Shown: positions 54,710-62,331, numbered from the whole stretch's first letter. The stretch is DNA of 62,331 bases, filler included, from Basidiobolus meristosporus CBS 931.73 (GCA_002104905.1; 5 parts of 5 records of this genome joined end to end with filler, not necessarily neighbours in it); one strand, 5' to 3'. Numbers and translations are program-made. The notes: generated by a model from the letters alone, not told the origin.

Positions 54710-56771
54710 TCCAGAGTCTAGTCCAGTAGGAAGGAAAGGAAAGCCAAGATATGTAGCAGAAACCTGAGCAGGTAGAGTGGAGTTCTCCAAGGTTGATGGG
54801 AGAGCCCAAAGGTACTGTCTTTGCAATGGAAAGCTGGAGATTATTCTTCTGCAGATACTGGTGGATGGTCTGGGAGTCTTGTTGCACATTGGAGGAGGAT
54901 ATTCTGATGTCATCAGCAAAGAGAGTAACCAGGCAGTCAGCTGAAAGTCTTGGGAAGTCATTCAGGAAGATGGCAAACAGTATAGGACCAAGCACAGAGC
55001 CTTGAACCACTCCATTAGGAACTGAGAACACAGTTGATTGCTCACTTGGGTGCAGAATTCTTGCTTGTGGATCCAGAAACAGAGACCTGACAAGGAGGGT
55101 GAGAGAGGTACTGGAGAAGCATTGCAACTTGGACCAAAGCAGATTTCTGTCAACTGAATCAAAGGCCTTAGTAATATCAAACAGAACAGAGGGATACTTG
55201 CACTGGAGAGAGTGATCTTGGCTAAGTATGACTGCATATTCCAAGGAGAGGCCAGGAACAAAGCCAAACTGTGCAGGATGAAACTTGAGGGAGTCAGAGT
55301 AGAGCTCCTGAGCAAGCAGAAGCTCAAACACCTTTCTGCAGGTGGGCAACAGAGATATTGGCCTGTAGGAGCTAGGATCCAGGTGCTTTCCTTTACCCTT
55401 GTACAGTGGCAGAACATTTGCAAAGGACCATTCCTCAGGAGTAGAAAGCTGGGCTGAGCATTGCTGAAACAGTGGAAGCAGAAGTGCAGACATGGCCTTG
55501 GTACTAGTCTTCAGAAGCTCATAAGAGATTGTGTCCACACCTGGAGCAGTAGAGTTGGGAAGCCTCTTGAGCACATTATGGATTCTCCTTTGATCAAGTG
55601 CAAGTGGGATGGGCAGAGTCTTGAAGTCAGGATGAAAGCCAGGAGTTGAGTACTGCTTTGTAGAGAAGAAGATGTTAGCCAGCTGTTCTGTTGAAGGTAA
55701 CTTCCTGGAAGAGGGCCTCATTGCTCTGTAGAGTCTTGATACTGTTCTTGTTATAGAGTTGGAAGATTGCAGAGGCAAAGAACTCATAATATGATCCCAG
55801 AGCTGAGTATGCAGAGTGTGGTGAATTGCCTTGGAGTGGTGTATTGCTGTCAGGAGGAGTTTCTCTGTTTTTGGGTTAGGGAAACTCAGGTAGCTTTGTT
55901 GCAGGGCTGAAACAATGGATTCCCATTTTCTTGAGGTAACAGCAGTAGTCTTGCATGGCAGTGAGAGGGAGGCAGACACCAGAATCAGATGCTTCACAAA
56001 GAGCCAGGCATAGTTGAGATCATCTGGCAGAGAAAGTAGCAAACTGGCAAGCTTCAAGTAGTTCCCAAAGTCTTTCTTCTGATTCTTGGTAGCTTTGTGG
56101 GTGAGCACAGTAAGTTTTGGCAGCTTCTTCTTCACAACTGGTTGCATAGAAAGGGACCAGGCTGGGTGGTCAGAGGCTCTCAAGGATCCTAGCTCAGCTC
56201 CAGAGAATTGCTTGACTTCATTCACAAAGTAGAGGGCAGCAGCAGAAGGGCAGATCCAGTCAACACATCTTTTCTCAGATTGAGCACCCAGTGCTAGCAG
56301 ATGGCTTTCTCTCAGGAAGTTCAGTAGGAATGTGAACCTTGGCTTCATTCTTGCAGTCAGAGTAGTCTTGTTCTCAGGATGGGGAATGTTGAGATCTCCA
56401 AGCAAGATAACAGGTGTTGATATAGATTGCTGGTATTGCTGAACTTTCTGGCAGATAACTTGCACTTCCTGAAGGGCAAGACTTGGAGGCAGATAGCAGA
56501 GCACCAGACTGATAGTTGGCAACTGGAGAGCAGCACAGTAAGGGGAGTAAAGAGGAACACAGAGCTGAGGAGTATTGATGGTAGAAGAGATGAAGCAGAT
56601 GGAGGAGGTATTCTTTGTTCTAGGAGTAGAAAAGTAATATAGATTAGTCAAAAGTATAGAGGGTAGCTGGACATCAATCAAACACAGGAGGGAAAATCTT
56701 GAAAGAAGTCTCTCTAGAGTTGGTCTTGATGGCTGTATGCTGTTGCAGTTAAGCAACAGTACTTCAGGTAG
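54710..56771 (-). pseudogene. LINE A5 ORF2 (APE endonuclease + RT), 1-bp insertion near 54790
   Basis: Near-identical to A6 ORF2 (five amino-acid differences visible before the frameshift). Confidence 0.88.
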
Positions 56772-57336
56772 TCAGGCAGAGGTTAGGGGGAGGAAAGTCA
56801 CCAAGTGGTGAAATCTTTATTTACTTATGACAAGTATCTAAAGAAGCCAAGTTAATCTGAAGTTATTCCTAGAAAGCTAGGTCTGAGAGATATCTTCCTG
56901 GTAAGCCAGGTCTAAGAGTTGAGAGGCTGAGTGGTACTATATTTCCTAGTTAGCTAGGTCTGAGAGAGGTTTCCTGGAAAGCCAGGCCTGAGAAGTGAGA
57001 ATCTGAATATATCTGAGCTAAGTTATACTGGTTTGCGGTAGCTGAATTGTGGCCGGAATGGCCAGTAGACTGGGGGAACTGAGATGAATTTCTTAGGGGG
57101 GAGGAAAGTCACCAAGTGGTGAAATCTTTATTTACTTATGACAAGTATCCAAAGAAGCCATGTTAATCTGAAGTAATTCCTAGAAAGCTAGGTCTGAGAG
57201 ATTAGGGTTAGGGGAGGGAAAGTCACCAAGGTAGGTGAAATCTTTATTTGATTTCAGACAAGTCTAACTACAAATAAAGAAGCCAGCTGGGAATAGAAGA
57301 TTCCCAAAGTAAATACTAAGTTGAATATGAATAAAT

Positions 57337-57977
57337 CTAAGCTAAAGTTAAGGCAGTATCCCAGAGTACACTGGAGTTCAGGTTCATGGGGGAGTGAAGT
57401 AGATAAGCTTGAGAGATATAATAATCTTTGAGGAAGTGGGTAACAGCAGGTGAAGGGGAGTTTTTGATAAGTGAAGTGAATCTTGAGAGCAGAGATTCCT
57501 CTAATGAGAAGGTCTTGTAAACTGGAGAATCAGGAAACTCTCCAGAGTGTGATGGTTGATAAATCTCATGTTGACAATCTTGGATAAGTTGTAACCTTGT
57601 TGCTTGAGATACATCCTATGCTCAGATATAGGAATAAACTCCACATTGGCAAAGTAGCAGACAGCCCAGTCAGTAGCAGGAGGCAAATCAGAAGTGGCAG
57701 GAAACTTTCTTTTGGTCTTGGGAGGAGCAGCAGGATGTCTTGAGGGAGCAGGAACAGACTTTTTGACAACTTCAGAGTAGGAAGAGTGAGCAGGAGCAGA
57801 TGATTCTTGGGGAGTCTTGTTGGCAGGAAGGGTTGGCACAGGGACAATAGATTCTTGCAGATCAGAGAAGGCAGAAAAGAGCTTTTGAACTTGCTTCTTG
57901 AGTAGAGCATTTTCAGCTTCAACAAGTGCAAGCCTTTCCTCAAGGAAAGAAATCTGAAGGGAATGGAGTGAAGGCAT
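57337..57977 (-). pseudogene. ORF1-only element C1: gag-like ORF1 homolog, frameshifted near 57530
   Basis: LPPATDWAVCYF...PISEHR...LSKIVNM aligns with A6 LPPASTWTVVYL...PISNIR...LSRIVNL; the shifted frame LLSRFTSLIKNSPSPAVTHFLK...LWDTA aligns with ILSFFAAIKRQAPSYDVAYFLK...LWDSA. Confidence 0.75.
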
Positions 57978-58019
57978 AAGAAATAAGAAGAAGAGGGTAA
58001 GATGGGGTGGGTGGGAGGG

Positions 58020-58359
58020 AAAATTAGCAGGGAGAAGAGAAGGAAGGAGCAAAAATTCCAGAAGTCAGAATTTATAGATGGATGGACAAGGGTAGATGGA
58101 TGGATTATTCCTGGGTTAGGAAAATTAGCAGGGAGAAGAGAAGGAAGGAGCAAAAATTCCAGAAGTCAGAATTTATAGATGGATGGACAAGGGTAGATGG
58201 ATGGATTATTCCTGGGTTAGGAAAATTAGCAGGGAGAAGAGAAGGAAGGAGCAAAAATTCCAGAAGTCAGAATTTATAGATGGATGGACAAGGGTAGATG
58301 GATGGATTATTCCTGGGTTAGGAAAATTAGCAGGGACAAGAGAAGGAAGGAGCAAAAAA
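58020..58359 (+). repeat. 101-bp tandem repeat, about 3.4 copies, each full unit ending GGGTTAGG
   Basis: Units start at 58020, 58121, 58222 and 58323. Confidence 0.95.
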
Positions 58360-58426
58360 GGGTTAGGGGGGGAGACAGTCACCAACAGGTGAAATCTTTA
58401 TTTCAGTTGAAACAAAGAAGCCAGCG

Positions 58427-61196
58427 CTACTGTTGTAGCTTTGATACAAGAGTGTGTAGCTGAGGGGAATTTGTAGGTAAGTTAATAAGAAGTGATGATA
58501 GTTCTTCAGTGCTCAAGACACTGTTCAGTGGGAAGGGGGGTAGCAAGAGAGGTAAGAATGACTTGTGAACAACATTAATGAGGGGAATGTGATAAGGATT
58601 GATATTCATCATAAAGGGAGTGTGCTGCTGCAGATATTGCTGCCAAAGGTCTGTCAAGTACTTCAGGTAGGCCAGCTTGGGTTTTTCTGACTGCAGAATA
58701 TAGTGAGCAAACTTCTTGACTTCAGGATCTCCAAGTATAGTTCTCCAGCAGGAGCCAGGTGTTGTGTGGTGTGTTCTCTTCCAGGCCTTAATCAGTGGGT
58801 TGTTGCAGTTGTGAAGTCTGAGGTATAATCTGGTTCTAAGGTAGAGAAGTCTGATCTTATAGGGCATAAACCCAAAAGCACCAAGAATAGCATGTCTGTA
58901 GGGGCATTCAGGCAAATGAGGACACCAAGGAGGTAATGCACCATACTGCAAACTTGTCAAGCTTAGTGCAGTCTCTAGAAGTAAGAGAGAGAAGTGGTAA
59001 GCCAAATTCCAGGACAGGGAAGACAAACTGCTTGAGTAGAAGGAGGCAGCTGGGAGCTGAAGTTGTAGGAGGAGTAACAGCCAGTAGCTTGTGGAGTGCC
59101 TGTCTTGCTAGGATAATTCTCTTCTTCAGGTGTGCTCCAGAGTCTAGTCCAGTAGGAAGGAAAGGAAAGCCAAGATATGTAGCAGAAACCTGAGCAGGTA
59201 GAGTGGAGTTCTCCAAGTTGATGGGAGAGCCCAAAGGTACTGTCTTTGCAATGGAAAGCTGGAGATTATTCTTCTGCAGATACTGGTGGATGGTCTGGGA
59301 GTCTTGTTGCACATTGGAGGAGGATATTCTGATGTCATCAGCAAAGAGAGTAACCAGGCAGTCAGCTGAGAGTCTTGGGAAATCATTCAGGAAGATGGCA
59401 AACAGTATAGGACCAAGCACAGAGCCTTGAACCACTCCATTAGGAACTGAGAACACAGCTGATTGCTCACTTGGGTGCAGAATTCTTGCTTGTGGATCCA
59501 GAAACAGAGACCTGACAAGGAGGGTGAGAGAGGTACTGGAGAAGCATTGCAACTTGGACCAAAGCAGATTTCTGTCAACTGAATCAAAGGCCTTAGTAAT
59601 ATCAAACAGAACAGAGGGATACTTGCACTGGAGAGAGTGATCTTGGCTAAGTATGACTGCATATTCCAAGGAGAGGCCAGGAACAAAGCCAAACTGTGCA
59701 GGATGAAACTTGAGAGAGTCAGAGTAGAGCTCCTGAGCAAGCAGAAGCTCAAACACCTTTCTGCAGGTGGGCAGCAGAGATATTGGCCTGTAGGAGCTAG
59801 GATCCAGGTGCTTTCCTTTACCCTTGTACAGTGGCAGAACATTTGCAAAGGACCATTCCTCAGGAGTAGAAAGCTGGGCTGAGCATTGCTGAAACAGTGG
59901 AAGCAGAAGTGCAGACATGGCCTTGGTACTAGTCTTCAGAAGCTCATAAGAGATTGTGTCCACACCTGGAGCAGTAGAGTTGGGAAGCCTCTTGAGCACA
60001 TTATGGATTCTCCTTTGATCAAGTGCAAGTGGGATGGGCAGAGTCTTGAAGTCAGGATGAAAGCCAGGAGTTGAGTACTGCTTTGTAGAGAAGAAGATGT
60101 TAGCCAGCTGTTCTGTTGAAGGTAACTTCCTGGAAGAGGGCCTCATTGCCCTGTAGAGTCTTGATACTGTTCTTGTTACAGAGTTGGAAGATTGCAGAGG
60201 CAAAGAACTCATAATATGATCCCAGAGCTGAGTATGCAGAGTGTGGTGAATTGCCTTGGAGTGGTGTATTGCTGTCAGGAGGAGTTTCTCTGTTTTTGGG
60301 TTAGGGAAGCTCAGGTAGCTTTGTTGCAGGGCTGAAACAATGGATTCCCATTTTCTTGAGGTAACAGCAGTAGTCTTGCATGGCAGTGAGAGGGAGGCAG
60401 ACACCAGAATCAGATGCTTCACAAAGAGCCAGGCAAAGTTGAGATCATCTGGCAGAGAAAGTAGCAAACTGGCAAGCTTCAAGTAGTTCCCAAAGTCTTT
60501 CTTCTGATTCTTGGTAGCTTTGTGGGTGAGCACAGTAAGTTTTGGCAGCTTCTTCTTCACAACTGGTTGCATAGAAAGGGACCAGGCTGGGTGGTCAGAG
60601 GCTCTCAAGGATCCTAGCTCAGCTCCAGAGAATTGCTTAACTTCATTCACAAAGTAGAGGGCAGCAGCAGAAGGGCAGATCCAGTCAACACATCTTTTCT
60701 CAGATTGAGCACCTAGTGCTAGCAGGTGGCTTTCTCTCAGGAAGTTCAGTAGGAATGTAGACCTTGGCTTCATTCTTGCAGTCAGAGTAGTCTTGTTCTC
60801 AGGATGGGGAATGTTGAGATCTCCAAGCAAGATAACAGGTGTTGATATAGATTGTTGGTATTGCTGAACCTTCTGGCATATAACTTGCACTTCCTGAAGG
60901 GCTAGACTTGGAGGCAGATAGCAGAGCACCAGACTGATAGTTGGCAACTGGAGAGCAGCACAGTAAGGGGAGTAAAGAGGAACACAGAGCTGAGGAGTAT
61001 TGATGGTAGAAGAGATGAAGCAGATAGAGGAGGTATTCTTTGTTCTAGGAGTAGAAAAGCAATATAGATTAGTCAAAAGTATAGAGGGTAGCTGGACATC
61101 AATCAAACACAGGAGGGAAAATCTTGACAGAAGTCTCTCTAGAGTTGGTCTTGATGGCTGTATGCTGTTGCAGTTAAGCAACAGAACTTCAGGTAG
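58427..61196 (-). CDS. LINE A6 ORF2: APE endonuclease + non-LTR reverse transcriptase (1-bp frameshift near 58922)
   Basis: LLNCNS, CYLPP, GDLN, VDWI, SDH; PGVD, YRPISLL, QFGF, DITKAFDSV, GVVQGSVLGP, FADD. Confidence 0.92.
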
Positions 61197-62324
61197 TCAG
61201 GCAGAGGTTGTAGCTTCTTCAGAGGCAGCATTAACAATGTGACCTGCAGAGTCCCAGAGCTCTTCAAATGGTGCATCACTTAAGTCAGCAAGGAGGGAAA
61301 TGGCATGGTTCTTGAGGAAGTATGCCACATCATAGGAGGGGGCTTGTCTCTTGATGGCAGCAAAGAAAGACAGAATGGCAACATGGGCTGGAGGCTTGCT
61401 GAACAGTAGAGAGTCAGAGGATTCAGATTCTTCAGGCACTATCTTGAAGTCAGTTTTCAGCCAGTTAAGGTTCTTCTCCACAAAGGCAACAAATGGGTCA
61501 GCAATGTTTTGGTCTAGGATAACCTCCAGAATCTTCCCTTTTCTCCAGGCCAGGTTGACAATTCTTGAGAGCTGAATATTGCATGCCTTGAGTGCTTTCC
61601 TGATGTTGGAAATGGGGGTCCAGGGAACTTGCTTCAAGTACACCACAGTCCAGGTAGAAGCTGGTGGTAGGTTTGCTGGGGGCTTGTAAGTCCTTCTGTG
61701 TTGCAATGGAGCTGCAGTAGTCAGATTGGAGTCCACATTCTCAGTAGAAGGTTTTCTTGATGTGTCTTGCTGAATAGTACTGGAGCTGGATGTGCTGATA
61801 ATTCTTGCTAGAACCTTGCCTGCATAAGTCTGAGGTATAGCTGAGGTGACTGTAGAGGTGGTGGCAGCTGGTGCAGGTGGAGAGGCAGAGACTGAAGCAG
61901 GAACTGAGGTCACCTGGGAGAAGGCAGTAGAAGCAGGTTTTCTGGGAGGAACAGAGTTCACTATCCAGTTGTTCTGTAAAACACTGGAGTAGCTTTTCTG
62001 TGGAACAGGATCTTGCTCTTGAACAGGAACAGAAGCAGGAGGCTGGGGCTGAGCAGTAGTGGTAAGGCAGTGGCACTCCAAGGAAGCTTTTTGCAAGGCA
62101 TCTCTGGCAGTTTTCAGGGCAGTATTGGCTTCATTCTTGAGCTTCTTGCATTGGGCATCCAGTCTCTTGTTTTCAATAGCCAGGGCAGTATTGGCAGCCT
62201 CTAAATCAGCAATTCTCTTCTCAATTGCAAGGAAATCTCTGAAGAAATGCATCAGTAGAAGTGCTGGCATCTGGGAGAGCAGTGCAGGAATAGAGTCCAT
62301 TGACAGTGGGCTTCTTGGAGGCAA
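61197..62324 (-). CDS. LINE A6 ORF1 (coiled coil, S/T/P-rich linker, conserved C-terminal domain)
   Basis: 375-codon open frame immediately upstream of, and in frame with, ORF2. Confidence 0.85.
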   Translation of the reverse strand: MPPRSPLSMDSIPALLSQMPALLLMHFFRDFLAIEKRIADLEAANTALAIENKRLDAQCKKLKNEANTALKTARDALQKASLECHCLTTTAQPQPPASVPVQEQDPVPQKSYSSVLQNNWIVNSVPPRKPASTAFSQVTSVPASVSASPPAPAATTSTVTSAIPQTYAGKVLARIISTSSSSTIQQDTSRKPSTENVDSNLTTAAPLQHRRTYKPPANLPPASTWTVVYLKQVPWTPISNIRKALKACNIQLSRIVNLAWRKGKILEVILDQNIADPFVAFVEKNLNWLKTDFKIVPEESESSDSLLFSKPPAHVAILSFFAAIKRQAPSYDVAYFLKNHAISLLADLSDAPFEELWDSAGHIVNAASEEATTSA

Positions 62325-62331
62325 GGAAAGT

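Follow-up and report, generated by a model that had tools for sequence, protein, structure and literature searches.

Background

Telomere-specialised retrotransposons are known from few lineages, and they are central to debates on the relation of telomerase to retroelements and on the way in which a parasite can become a builder of chromosome ends. Here we describe elements without long terminal repeats (non-LTR elements) in Basidiobolus meristosporus CBS 931.73, an early-diverging fungus with unusually many chromosome ends. The stretch of DNA that was analysed (the window) comprises 62,331 nucleotides (nt), filler included, joined from five records of this genome; the elements fill its positions 54710-62331 (the piece). 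They very probably represent a telomere-attached non-LTR retrotransposon system of B. meristosporus, made up of a long interspersed nuclear element (LINE), a Gag-only element that carries only the first open reading frame (ORF1), and a partner that resembles a short interspersed nuclear element (SINE).

TRAS1 and SART1 of Bombyx mori (R1 clade) are LINEs with an apurinic/apyrimidinic-type endonuclease (APE) and a reverse transcriptase (RT), and reside in or beside telomeric repeats in one fixed orientation; the sense strand of TRAS is continuous with the C-rich telomere strand, and telomerase-type repeats coexist with the element. TRAS and SART have poly(A) ends and a gag-like ORF1 with zinc knuckles, and Zepp of Chlorella is polyadenylated. 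The Basidiobolus element is like TRAS and SART in architecture, location and polarity, whereas it lacks poly(A), ends in a tail complementary to the telomere repeat, encodes an ORF1 protein with a predicted coiled coil and RRM-like domain, and lives in a fungal host. Copies in fixed orientation within host repeats, by which TRAS and SART are recognised, are also found in the Basidiobolus arrays.

HeT-A, TART and TAHRE of Drosophila likewise form head-to-tail, multi-family arrays with 3' ends directed to the centromere and variable 5' truncation. They also have a Gag/ORF1-only partner beside RT-encoding elements as well as a strand-biased composition (PMC5537684, PMC10088271), and strand bias is reported for telomeric retrotransposons (PMC10088271). 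In contrast to Drosophila, which lacks telomerase repeats and whose elements attach by poly(A), Basidiobolus has a chromosome end of (TTAGGG)33, short TTAGGG seeds between units, and a SINE-like third partner. The RNAs of Athena and Coprina elements end at the 3' side in telomeric repeats in reverse complement, which have been proposed to anneal to G-rich overhangs; the elements themselves carry no poly(A)-independent claim here beyond this, and they are sub-terminal, and Coprina has been found in fungi (PMC8557442). The type of 3' end and the sub-terminal place are shared by the Basidiobolus family, but Athena and Coprina have a Penelope-like RT, no endonuclease and hammerhead ribozyme motifs, whereas the Basidiobolus element is a LINE with an APE, in which Rfam scans detected no ribozyme.

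Among fungi, MoTeR1 and MoTeR2 of Pyricularia oryzae, FoTeR of Fusarium oxysporum and Cnl1 of Cryptococcus form dynamic telomeric or subtelomeric arrays with short telomere repeats between the units, as in Basidiobolus, and MoTeR2 is non-autonomous like the partners described below. These elements belong to the CRE clade and have a single ORF in which the RT is followed by a C-terminal restriction-like endonuclease (REL, PD-(D/E)XK) (PMC12857005), whereas the Basidiobolus family has two ORFs and an N-terminal APE; homology searches returned no MoTeR, FoTeR or Cnl1 members among its homologues. Outside insects, Zepp and Tx1-1_ACar of Anolis have been reported as APE-type LINEs at telomeres (PMC10088271); the text consulted mentions for them no Gag-only or SINE partners with a shared structured 3' module. 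The full-text literature searched on telomeres, retrotransposons and non-LTR elements of Basidiobolus and Zoopagomycota does not describe the family. Because all fungal telomeric non-LTR elements recorded in the literature searched are of the CRE/REL type, the Basidiobolus family differs from them in kind, and it is apparently the first APE-type LINE of telomeric kind in fungi. It joins features so far seen separately, namely an APE LINE (TRAS, TART), a Gag-only partner (HeT-A), a telomere-complementary tail in place of poly(A) (Athena, Coprina) and a SINE-like partner with a common structured 3' recognition module; it provides an accessible system for asking whether end-targeting requires an endonuclease.

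Results and discussion

Organization of the array

The piece contains five non-LTR units on one strand, the minus strand being the sense strand, with four junctions between them (Table 1): two copies of an APE- and RT-encoding LINE (A and E), a single element with ORF1 only (B), and two non-coding copies with truncated 5' ends (C and D). Long ORFs are confined to the minus strand. The plus strand has 29% G as compared to 16.5% C, and 112 GGG runs as compared to 18 CCC runs; the correspondingly G-poor sense strand (16.5% G) agrees with the strand bias that PMC10088271 reports for telomeric retrotransposons. Four minus-strand copies of one motif of about 40 nt, recovered by repeat finding, by a regular expression and by a covariance model, delimit the units. 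Unit E is 98.9% identical to unit A, is truncated at its 5' end 11 nt upstream of the ORF1 stop, and has a 1-bp insertion of its own near position 54791.

An earlier note on this DNA had proposed five non-LTR units arranged head to tail on the minus strand, belonging to several families and including an ORF1-only partner. Five units and four junctions can indeed be read; the system as a whole comprises two or more autonomous and two ORF1-only lineages along with one 527-nt non-coding family, and intact copies of B encode a complete ORF1-like protein. The note had also placed a TTAGGG seed at each junction. The seeds are real, but their core, on the sense strand a run of C followed by TAA, belongs to the element, being its own conserved tail. 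Beyond this core, the piece has zero to one extra CCCTAA before the next unit, and only these extra repeats vary.

On the plus strand of the piece TTAGGG occurs seven times, on the minus strand not at all, whereas 3.4 occurrences are expected from shuffled sequences (P ~0.05). The bare count, being only marginally above shuffles, was rejected as evidence; the signal lies in position, with five of the seven at junctions and two within the ORF2 copies. The latter two, at 55876 and 60301, occupy the equivalent ORF2 position (...FPNPK...), where TAACCC is also present in relatives (L003), and are probably coincidental coding sequence.

Logan contigs of the source sample, from which depth and junctions were read, contain many more independent junctions, in which variable 5'-truncation points run into a module start (58359-58369, 57099-57211) across a bridge that is mostly TA, TTA or GGGTTA. 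Units from 39 nt to ~4.5 kb in length have identical 3' ends and variable 5' truncation, and the summed depth along A drops from 3' to 5'. Three runs from 2013 (X6-X8) with the same species label contain next to none of the 31-mers of the piece, which hints that arrays differ strongly between strains, or that these contig sets dropped them.

Arrays at scaffold ends

Related arrays were inspected at the ends of two scaffolds of strain CBS 931.73, in the last 20 kb of MCFE01000243.1 (L036) and at the end of the 176-kb scaffold MCFE01000090.1 (L034). Units of the piece match these loci at 98-99.5% nt identity; unit A, for example, is 99.4% identical to L036:4799-8765. Scaffold MCFE01000243.1 terminates in (CCCTAA)33, so that the host telomere repeat is TTAGGG. 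This tract directly adjoins a 39-nt 3' fragment of the A family, followed by one CCCTAA and a 2.1-kb A copy; further in are D copies, an ORF1-only element of a second lineage (B2), a full-length A (~4.55 kb) and another D. The array measures 9.3 kb, is G-poor and has one orientation throughout, and at its inner boundary ...C6-TAA-(CCCTAA)2 adjoins unique DNA. The end of MCFE01000090.1 falls inside a B unit, and the terminal 9 kb of this scaffold carry six modules. According to the covariance model, all 17 distinct modules on both scaffolds read from the scaffold end inward, and the model found no module on the other strand or deeper in on either of them. The two annotated proteins of the family, the sole ones in the CBS 931.73 genome, are encoded within 21 kb of scaffold ends.

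These arrays agree with the polarity that the earlier note had assumed, with a C-rich sense strand, 3' ends facing the centromere, and a chromosome end that lies to the 3' side of the G-rich strand. It had named a host repeat unrelated to TTAGGG as an argument against its reading; the terminal tract consists of TTAGGG repeats. Its expectation that copies lie at ends or beside long (TTAGGG)n holds for L036 and L034, but not for a further array on MCFE01000243.1 (L035:11731-15607).

The latter is one of several observations that weigh against a telomere-attached system. It is located 21-25 kb from the scaffold end, with four modules of the same polarity behind ~11 kb of DNA of ordinary composition with small unannotated ORFs, so the elements are not strictly terminal. 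Several proximal-most units (L002, L034, L035) adjoin non-telomeric DNA with TAA alone in between. Internal seeds have no more than about five repeats, as compared to 33 in the terminal tract, which is not what a simple model of addition to telomeres of full length would predict. Both copies of the LINE in the piece (A and E) carry a frameshift. Finally, the piece is a 7.6-kb contig without a long telomere tract, and the inspection of the genome covered three loci of one assembly.

The 3' module and its tail

All units share one kind of 3' module at their ends, which consists of two hairpins and a tail; on the sense strand, the units of the piece end in ...AAAUAAAGAUUUCACC-loop-GGUGA-(7-8 nt)-C(4-7)-UAA. 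The two-hairpin fold is predicted for all eight variants from the piece and its relatives (z from -1.6 to -5.3). In the predicted structures, hairpin 1 has 10-14 bp with the base UCUUU.../...AAAGA, which would put the AAUAAA sequence within a stem, and is followed by a linker of 2-3 nt, a CACC/GGUG hairpin of 4-5 bp with a variable loop of 4-6 nt, and an unpaired tail of ~15 nt. Compensatory changes occur at the base of stem 1 (UCUUU/AAAGA to UAUUU/AAAUA, replacing C-G by A-U) and, in L002b, in stem 2 (UCACC/GGUGA to ACACC/GGUGU, replacing U-A by A-U); the apical sequences of the variants differ, yet still pair. The covariance model matches the piece exactly four times, each time on the minus strand (59-64 bits; the match in A, at 58364-58402, scores 60.4 bits), and 33 matches in the 171 kb searched, every one on the sense strand.

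Across families, the tail consists of 4-10 C and UAA, usually followed by 0-2.5 further CCCUAA units; it is the complement of the host TTAGGG repeat, in register. TAA follows 27 of 30 modules, with no extra base in nine, CC or CCC in about eight, one further repeat in eight, two in two and ~4.5 in one. Poly(A) is absent from all 30. Scanning the piece and L036:1-9400 against Rfam by E-value revealed no known RNA family and no ribozyme. A DNA-pattern scan for the module also returned 21 loci in JGI metagenomes (L009-L029), which were discarded as chance matches lacking the C-run/TAA tail; a stricter module pattern found nothing in bacterial or archaeal genome contigs or in viral contigs.

The autonomous element

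The full-length A element is ~4.55 kb long (L036:4219-8767); the 5' untranslated region (UTR) and the ORF1 N-terminus of unit A lie beyond the edge of the piece. ORF1 of A is predicted to combine a coiled coil with a disordered linker rich in S/P, an RRM-like domain and a C-terminal domain made of helices. In the AlphaFold model, residues 21-82 form a helix (60 residues modelled with confidence) and residues 222-300 a beta-alpha-beta-beta-alpha domain; RRM matches in the fold search were moderate (Z 7-8), most of the match list being due to the coiled coil. Full-length relatives of ORF1 have an additional Cys-rich motif at the N-terminus.

With its N-terminal apurinic/apyrimidinic-type endonuclease and its reverse transcriptase, ORF2 is that of an APE-type LINE. 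The Pfam matches to Exo_endo_phos_2 and Exo_endo_phos are below the curated cut-off; among solved structures L1 ORF2p ranks as the best relative (E=5e-13), and the C-terminus of ORF2 has no Pfam match. The APE motifs align with those of canonical elements and are kept in seven lineages at 40-77% identity (the N of LNxN, YxPP, GDxN..H, the aspartate of VDW, and SDH), the acidic residue being D in all seven as compared to E in canonical elements. In comparison with the closest relative, the proportions of nonsynonymous (pN) and synonymous (pS) differences in the APE region are 0.14 and 0.57, respectively, and dN/dS of the whole ORF2 is 0.07-0.19; APE and RT are thus both under purifying selection. 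Since its motifs are conserved and the region is under constraint, the APE of the LINE appears to be a working nuclease. Unit A owes the frameshift in its ORF2 to a 1-bp insertion of its own near 58922, and the inserted base is missing from about 98% of the source-sample read depth.

In all seven lineages ORF2 shares the frame of ORF1, from which it is split by one UGA followed by CU (UGA CUA, CUU or CUC; compared were the inter-ORF regions of the piece at 61179-61199 and of L001, L002, L004, L030, L031 and L032), and an ATG near the ORF2 start is found in two of the seven only. This arrangement suggests that ORF2 may be made as an ORF1-ORF2 fusion by stop-codon read-through, or by reinitiation. 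The 5' UTR of the autonomous element (L036:4219-4425, L033:1-230) has an embedded (CCCTAA)2 and a ATCCATCC repeat block, both of which are kept between B. meristosporus and B. ranarum.

Non-autonomous partners

ORF1-only elements measure ~1-1.3 kb and form two lineages, B and B2. Unit B is a deletion derivative with an internal deletion of 86 bp as compared to the copies in L034; its ORF shares 36% identity over 74 amino acids (aa) with ORF1 of A (BLASTP E=3e-12). Intact B copies (L034) and B2 (L036) encode a complete protein with coiled-coil, RRM-like and C-terminal parts. From the values of pN (0.33) and pS (0.81) between B and B2, the ORF1-only protein is under purifying selection. The TAACCC and ATCCATCC motifs in the 5' monomers of B are related to those in the 5' UTR of the autonomous element.

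The D family is non-coding and ~527 nt long, with full-length copies at L036:2361-2890 and L036:8768-9292; its 5' end was found at three independent junctions. Its 5' region (L036:8768-8840, L036:2361-2435) contains TTAGCCTTGTGG ... GGTTCAAATCC, about 30 nt apart, which resemble the A and B boxes of RNA polymerase III promoters. Despite these motifs, neither ARAGORN nor Rfam detected a tRNA in this family, so that an internal promoter of a SINE can serve only as a lead; the label of a tRNA-derived SINE was considered and not adopted.

A second autonomous lineage, at L034:2159-6185, has 65-70% nt identity to A, and two autonomous lineages coexist in the sample of one relative (L006, L031). Because one 3' module is common to the autonomous, ORF1-only and non-coding families, the partners of B and D type are presumably copied in trans by the RT of the LINE.

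Proposed mode of attachment and alternatives

According to the mechanism we propose, the RNA of the LINE would lack poly(A) and end in the two hairpins and the unpaired pyrimidine tail. The RT would recognise the hairpins of the module, and the tail would pair with, or be copied directly onto, the 3'-OH of the G-rich telomere strand. Reverse transcription would proceed toward the 5' end of the RNA, often stopping early, so that each new unit would point its 3' end to the centromere and follow on a very short TTAGGG seed. By repetition, head-to-tail sub-terminal arrays would arise, which would then be capped by telomerase-type repeats. The structure requires reverse transcription to initiate at the last position of the tail, from a 3'-OH of the G-rich strand.

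As to the source of this 3'-OH, we lean slightly towards a nick set by the APE in duplex telomeric DNA rather than a natural or eroded chromosome end. Priming from such a nick would account for the conserved nuclease, and could account for the short seeds if longer internal tracts are the targets and are split by later insertions. Pure end-addition as in HeT-A and Athena, in which the tail would anneal to the natural 3' terminus of a chromosome that is eroded or uncapped, or would be copied straight onto it, is a serious competitor, if a somewhat less probable one; no nick would be needed, the APE would serve another purpose or occasional internal insertions, and the elements would act as back-up for telomere healing. 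End-addition is suggested by nine junctions that have TTA alone between the truncated 5' end of the previous unit and the next module, several of them without microhomology (L004:526, L034:638), so that TTA would seem templated by the RNA and added to a 3' end that is not telomeric. It would likewise suit the proximal-most units, which are joined to unique DNA by TAA only or by 2.5 repeats, the distal-most unit of L036, a 39-nt abortive copy under 33 repeats, and the design of the tail, which is like that of the endonuclease-lacking Athena and Coprina (PMC8557442). It fits poorly, however, with APE motifs that are conserved under purifying selection in seven lineages, and it predicts long buried TTAGGG tracts, whereas none exceeds about five repeats, a discrepancy that end-addition escapes only if the ends were nearly eroded.

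In many LINEs short repeats take the place of a poly(A) end, for instance (TAA)n in the I factor and (TGTAA)n in UnaL2. The elements might therefore be an ordinary dispersed LINE/SINE family whose tail is merely telomere-like, and whose arrays arose by nested self-insertion or by subtelomeric recombination and duplication. The existence of an interstitial array and the high abundance in the source sample (~18,000 contig pieces) would be in line with this, but tail and host repeat are in register, for up to 2.5 perfect repeats, an array directly adjoins the true terminal tract, the polarity is inward in 17 of 17 modules at two independent scaffold ends, and almost all resolved neighbours are same-orientation units of the system; we consider a dispersed family very unlikely. 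That the order of units in the piece is an assembly chimera threaded through the shared 40-70-nt module is scarcely credible, for although the piece is a short contig built of high-copy repeats and unit D stands between different flanks in an X3 contig, like arrays occur on 117-kb and 176-kb scaffolds and in contigs of at least five other samples, 81% of the 31-mers of the piece are present in X1 and X2 and back the local junctions, and the junction types stay real even if the order of the units is wrong.

Returning to the telomere-attached system, a role of its elements in telomere elongation, as put forward in the earlier note, is offered here as a hypothesis; telomerase-type repeats still cap the end. 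It is conceivable, though we would not expect it, that the trio of LINE, Gag-only and SINE-like elements constitutes a second telomere maintenance or healing system beside telomerase, the tail priming on eroded ends. If so, a counterpart of the HeT-A/TART/TAHRE mutualism of Drosophila would have evolved independently in a fungus, seen at a stage at which telomerase repeats and retroelements still coexist.

Conservation in relatives

Close relatives of ORF2, at 49-85% aa identity, were found in ENA/Logan contigs of 2-6 kb, which have the same module and tail at the end and in several cases run on into further short units; over the whole range of relatives (40-85% aa identity), module, tail and arrays are kept. 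ORF1 has one named relative, Basidiobolus ranarum, in a contig with the same 5' UTR, ORF1 N-terminus and G-poor strand. As the family is conserved across Basidiobolus species and is under purifying selection, the association appears to be long-lived. In a profile search of 1.84 billion representatives the family stood isolated, its members, two of which are annotated proteins of B. meristosporus CBS 931.73, scoring at least 428 bits and all others at most 281 bits, except for an Artemia gene model of 1,996 aa that reached 570 bits summed over six matched stretches. The nearest RT outgroups are unnamed or generic RTs of animal LINEs.

Table 1. Features of the array at positions 54710-62331 of the window
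Feature	Position	Strand	Remarks
Unit A, autonomous LINE copy	58363..62331	-	Cut by the edge of the piece inside ORF1
Unit B, ORF1-only element	57208..58359	-	5'-truncated inside its own 101-bp monomers
Unit C, 109-nt 3' fragment of the D family	57093..57201	-	Module and tail of C6 then TAA; repeat family, covariance model
Unit D, 3' 310 nt of the ~527-nt non-coding SINE-like family	56783..57092	-	28-nt internal sub-repeats, own module
Unit E, second copy of the A family	54710..56782	-	Cut by the edge of the piece
3' module of A	58363..58425	-	Predicted hairpin 1 (UCUUUGUUUC/GAAAUAAAGA) and hairpin 2 (UCACC-loop-GGUGA), pyrimidine tail to C7 then UAA; fold z = -3.9
3' module of B	57208..57286	-	Two predicted hairpins, tail of C4 then UAA; fold z = -4.3, covariance model 59.2 bits
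5' region of B, 3.4 tandem 101-bp monomers	58018..58358	-	TAACCC and ATCCATCC motifs in each
ORF of B, 158 aa from ATG	57501..57977	-	Coiled coil and first part of RRM-like domain; BLASTP
ORF1 of A, 375 aa seen	61197..62324	-	UGA stop at 61197-61199
ORF2 of A, 757 aa	58908..61196	-	In frame with ORF1 behind a single UGA
APE endonuclease of A ORF2	~60591-61181	-	Pfam Exo_endo_phos_2, E=2.4e-4
RT of A ORF2	~59163-59801	-	Pfam RVT_1, E=1.8e-25
C-terminal part of A ORF2, 199 aa	58427..59026	-	Past the frameshift; relatives have one continuous ORF2 of 821-923 aa here
Junction	56781	+	Reads GG-TTA-G5
Junction	57093	+	Reads TTA-G6
Junction 3, one full extra telomere repeat	57202..57207	.	Reads TTAGGG-TTA-G4 on the plus strand
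Junction 4, extra half repeat	58360..58362	.	Reads GGG-TTA-G7 on the plus strand; GGG separates B's 5' end from the TTA in the tail of A

Surroundings of the scaffold-end arrays

The array at L035:11731-15607 is older-looking and resembles a buried former chromosome end; beyond it, at L035:21314, there is a nonribosomal peptide synthetase (NRPS) gene. On MCFE01000090.1, the array is interrupted by ~870 bp of G-richer DNA unlike the elements (L034:6186-7057), followed by two older A fragments (L034:7058-9046; 94-96% identity) whose tails have lost the TAA. Just inside this terminal array, five tandem genes (L034:10790-18266) code for proteins of 181-231 aa with a CHAP domain, which is a peptidoglycan hydrolase domain of bacterial type; the cluster may represent the subtelomeric expansion of a horizontally acquired gene.

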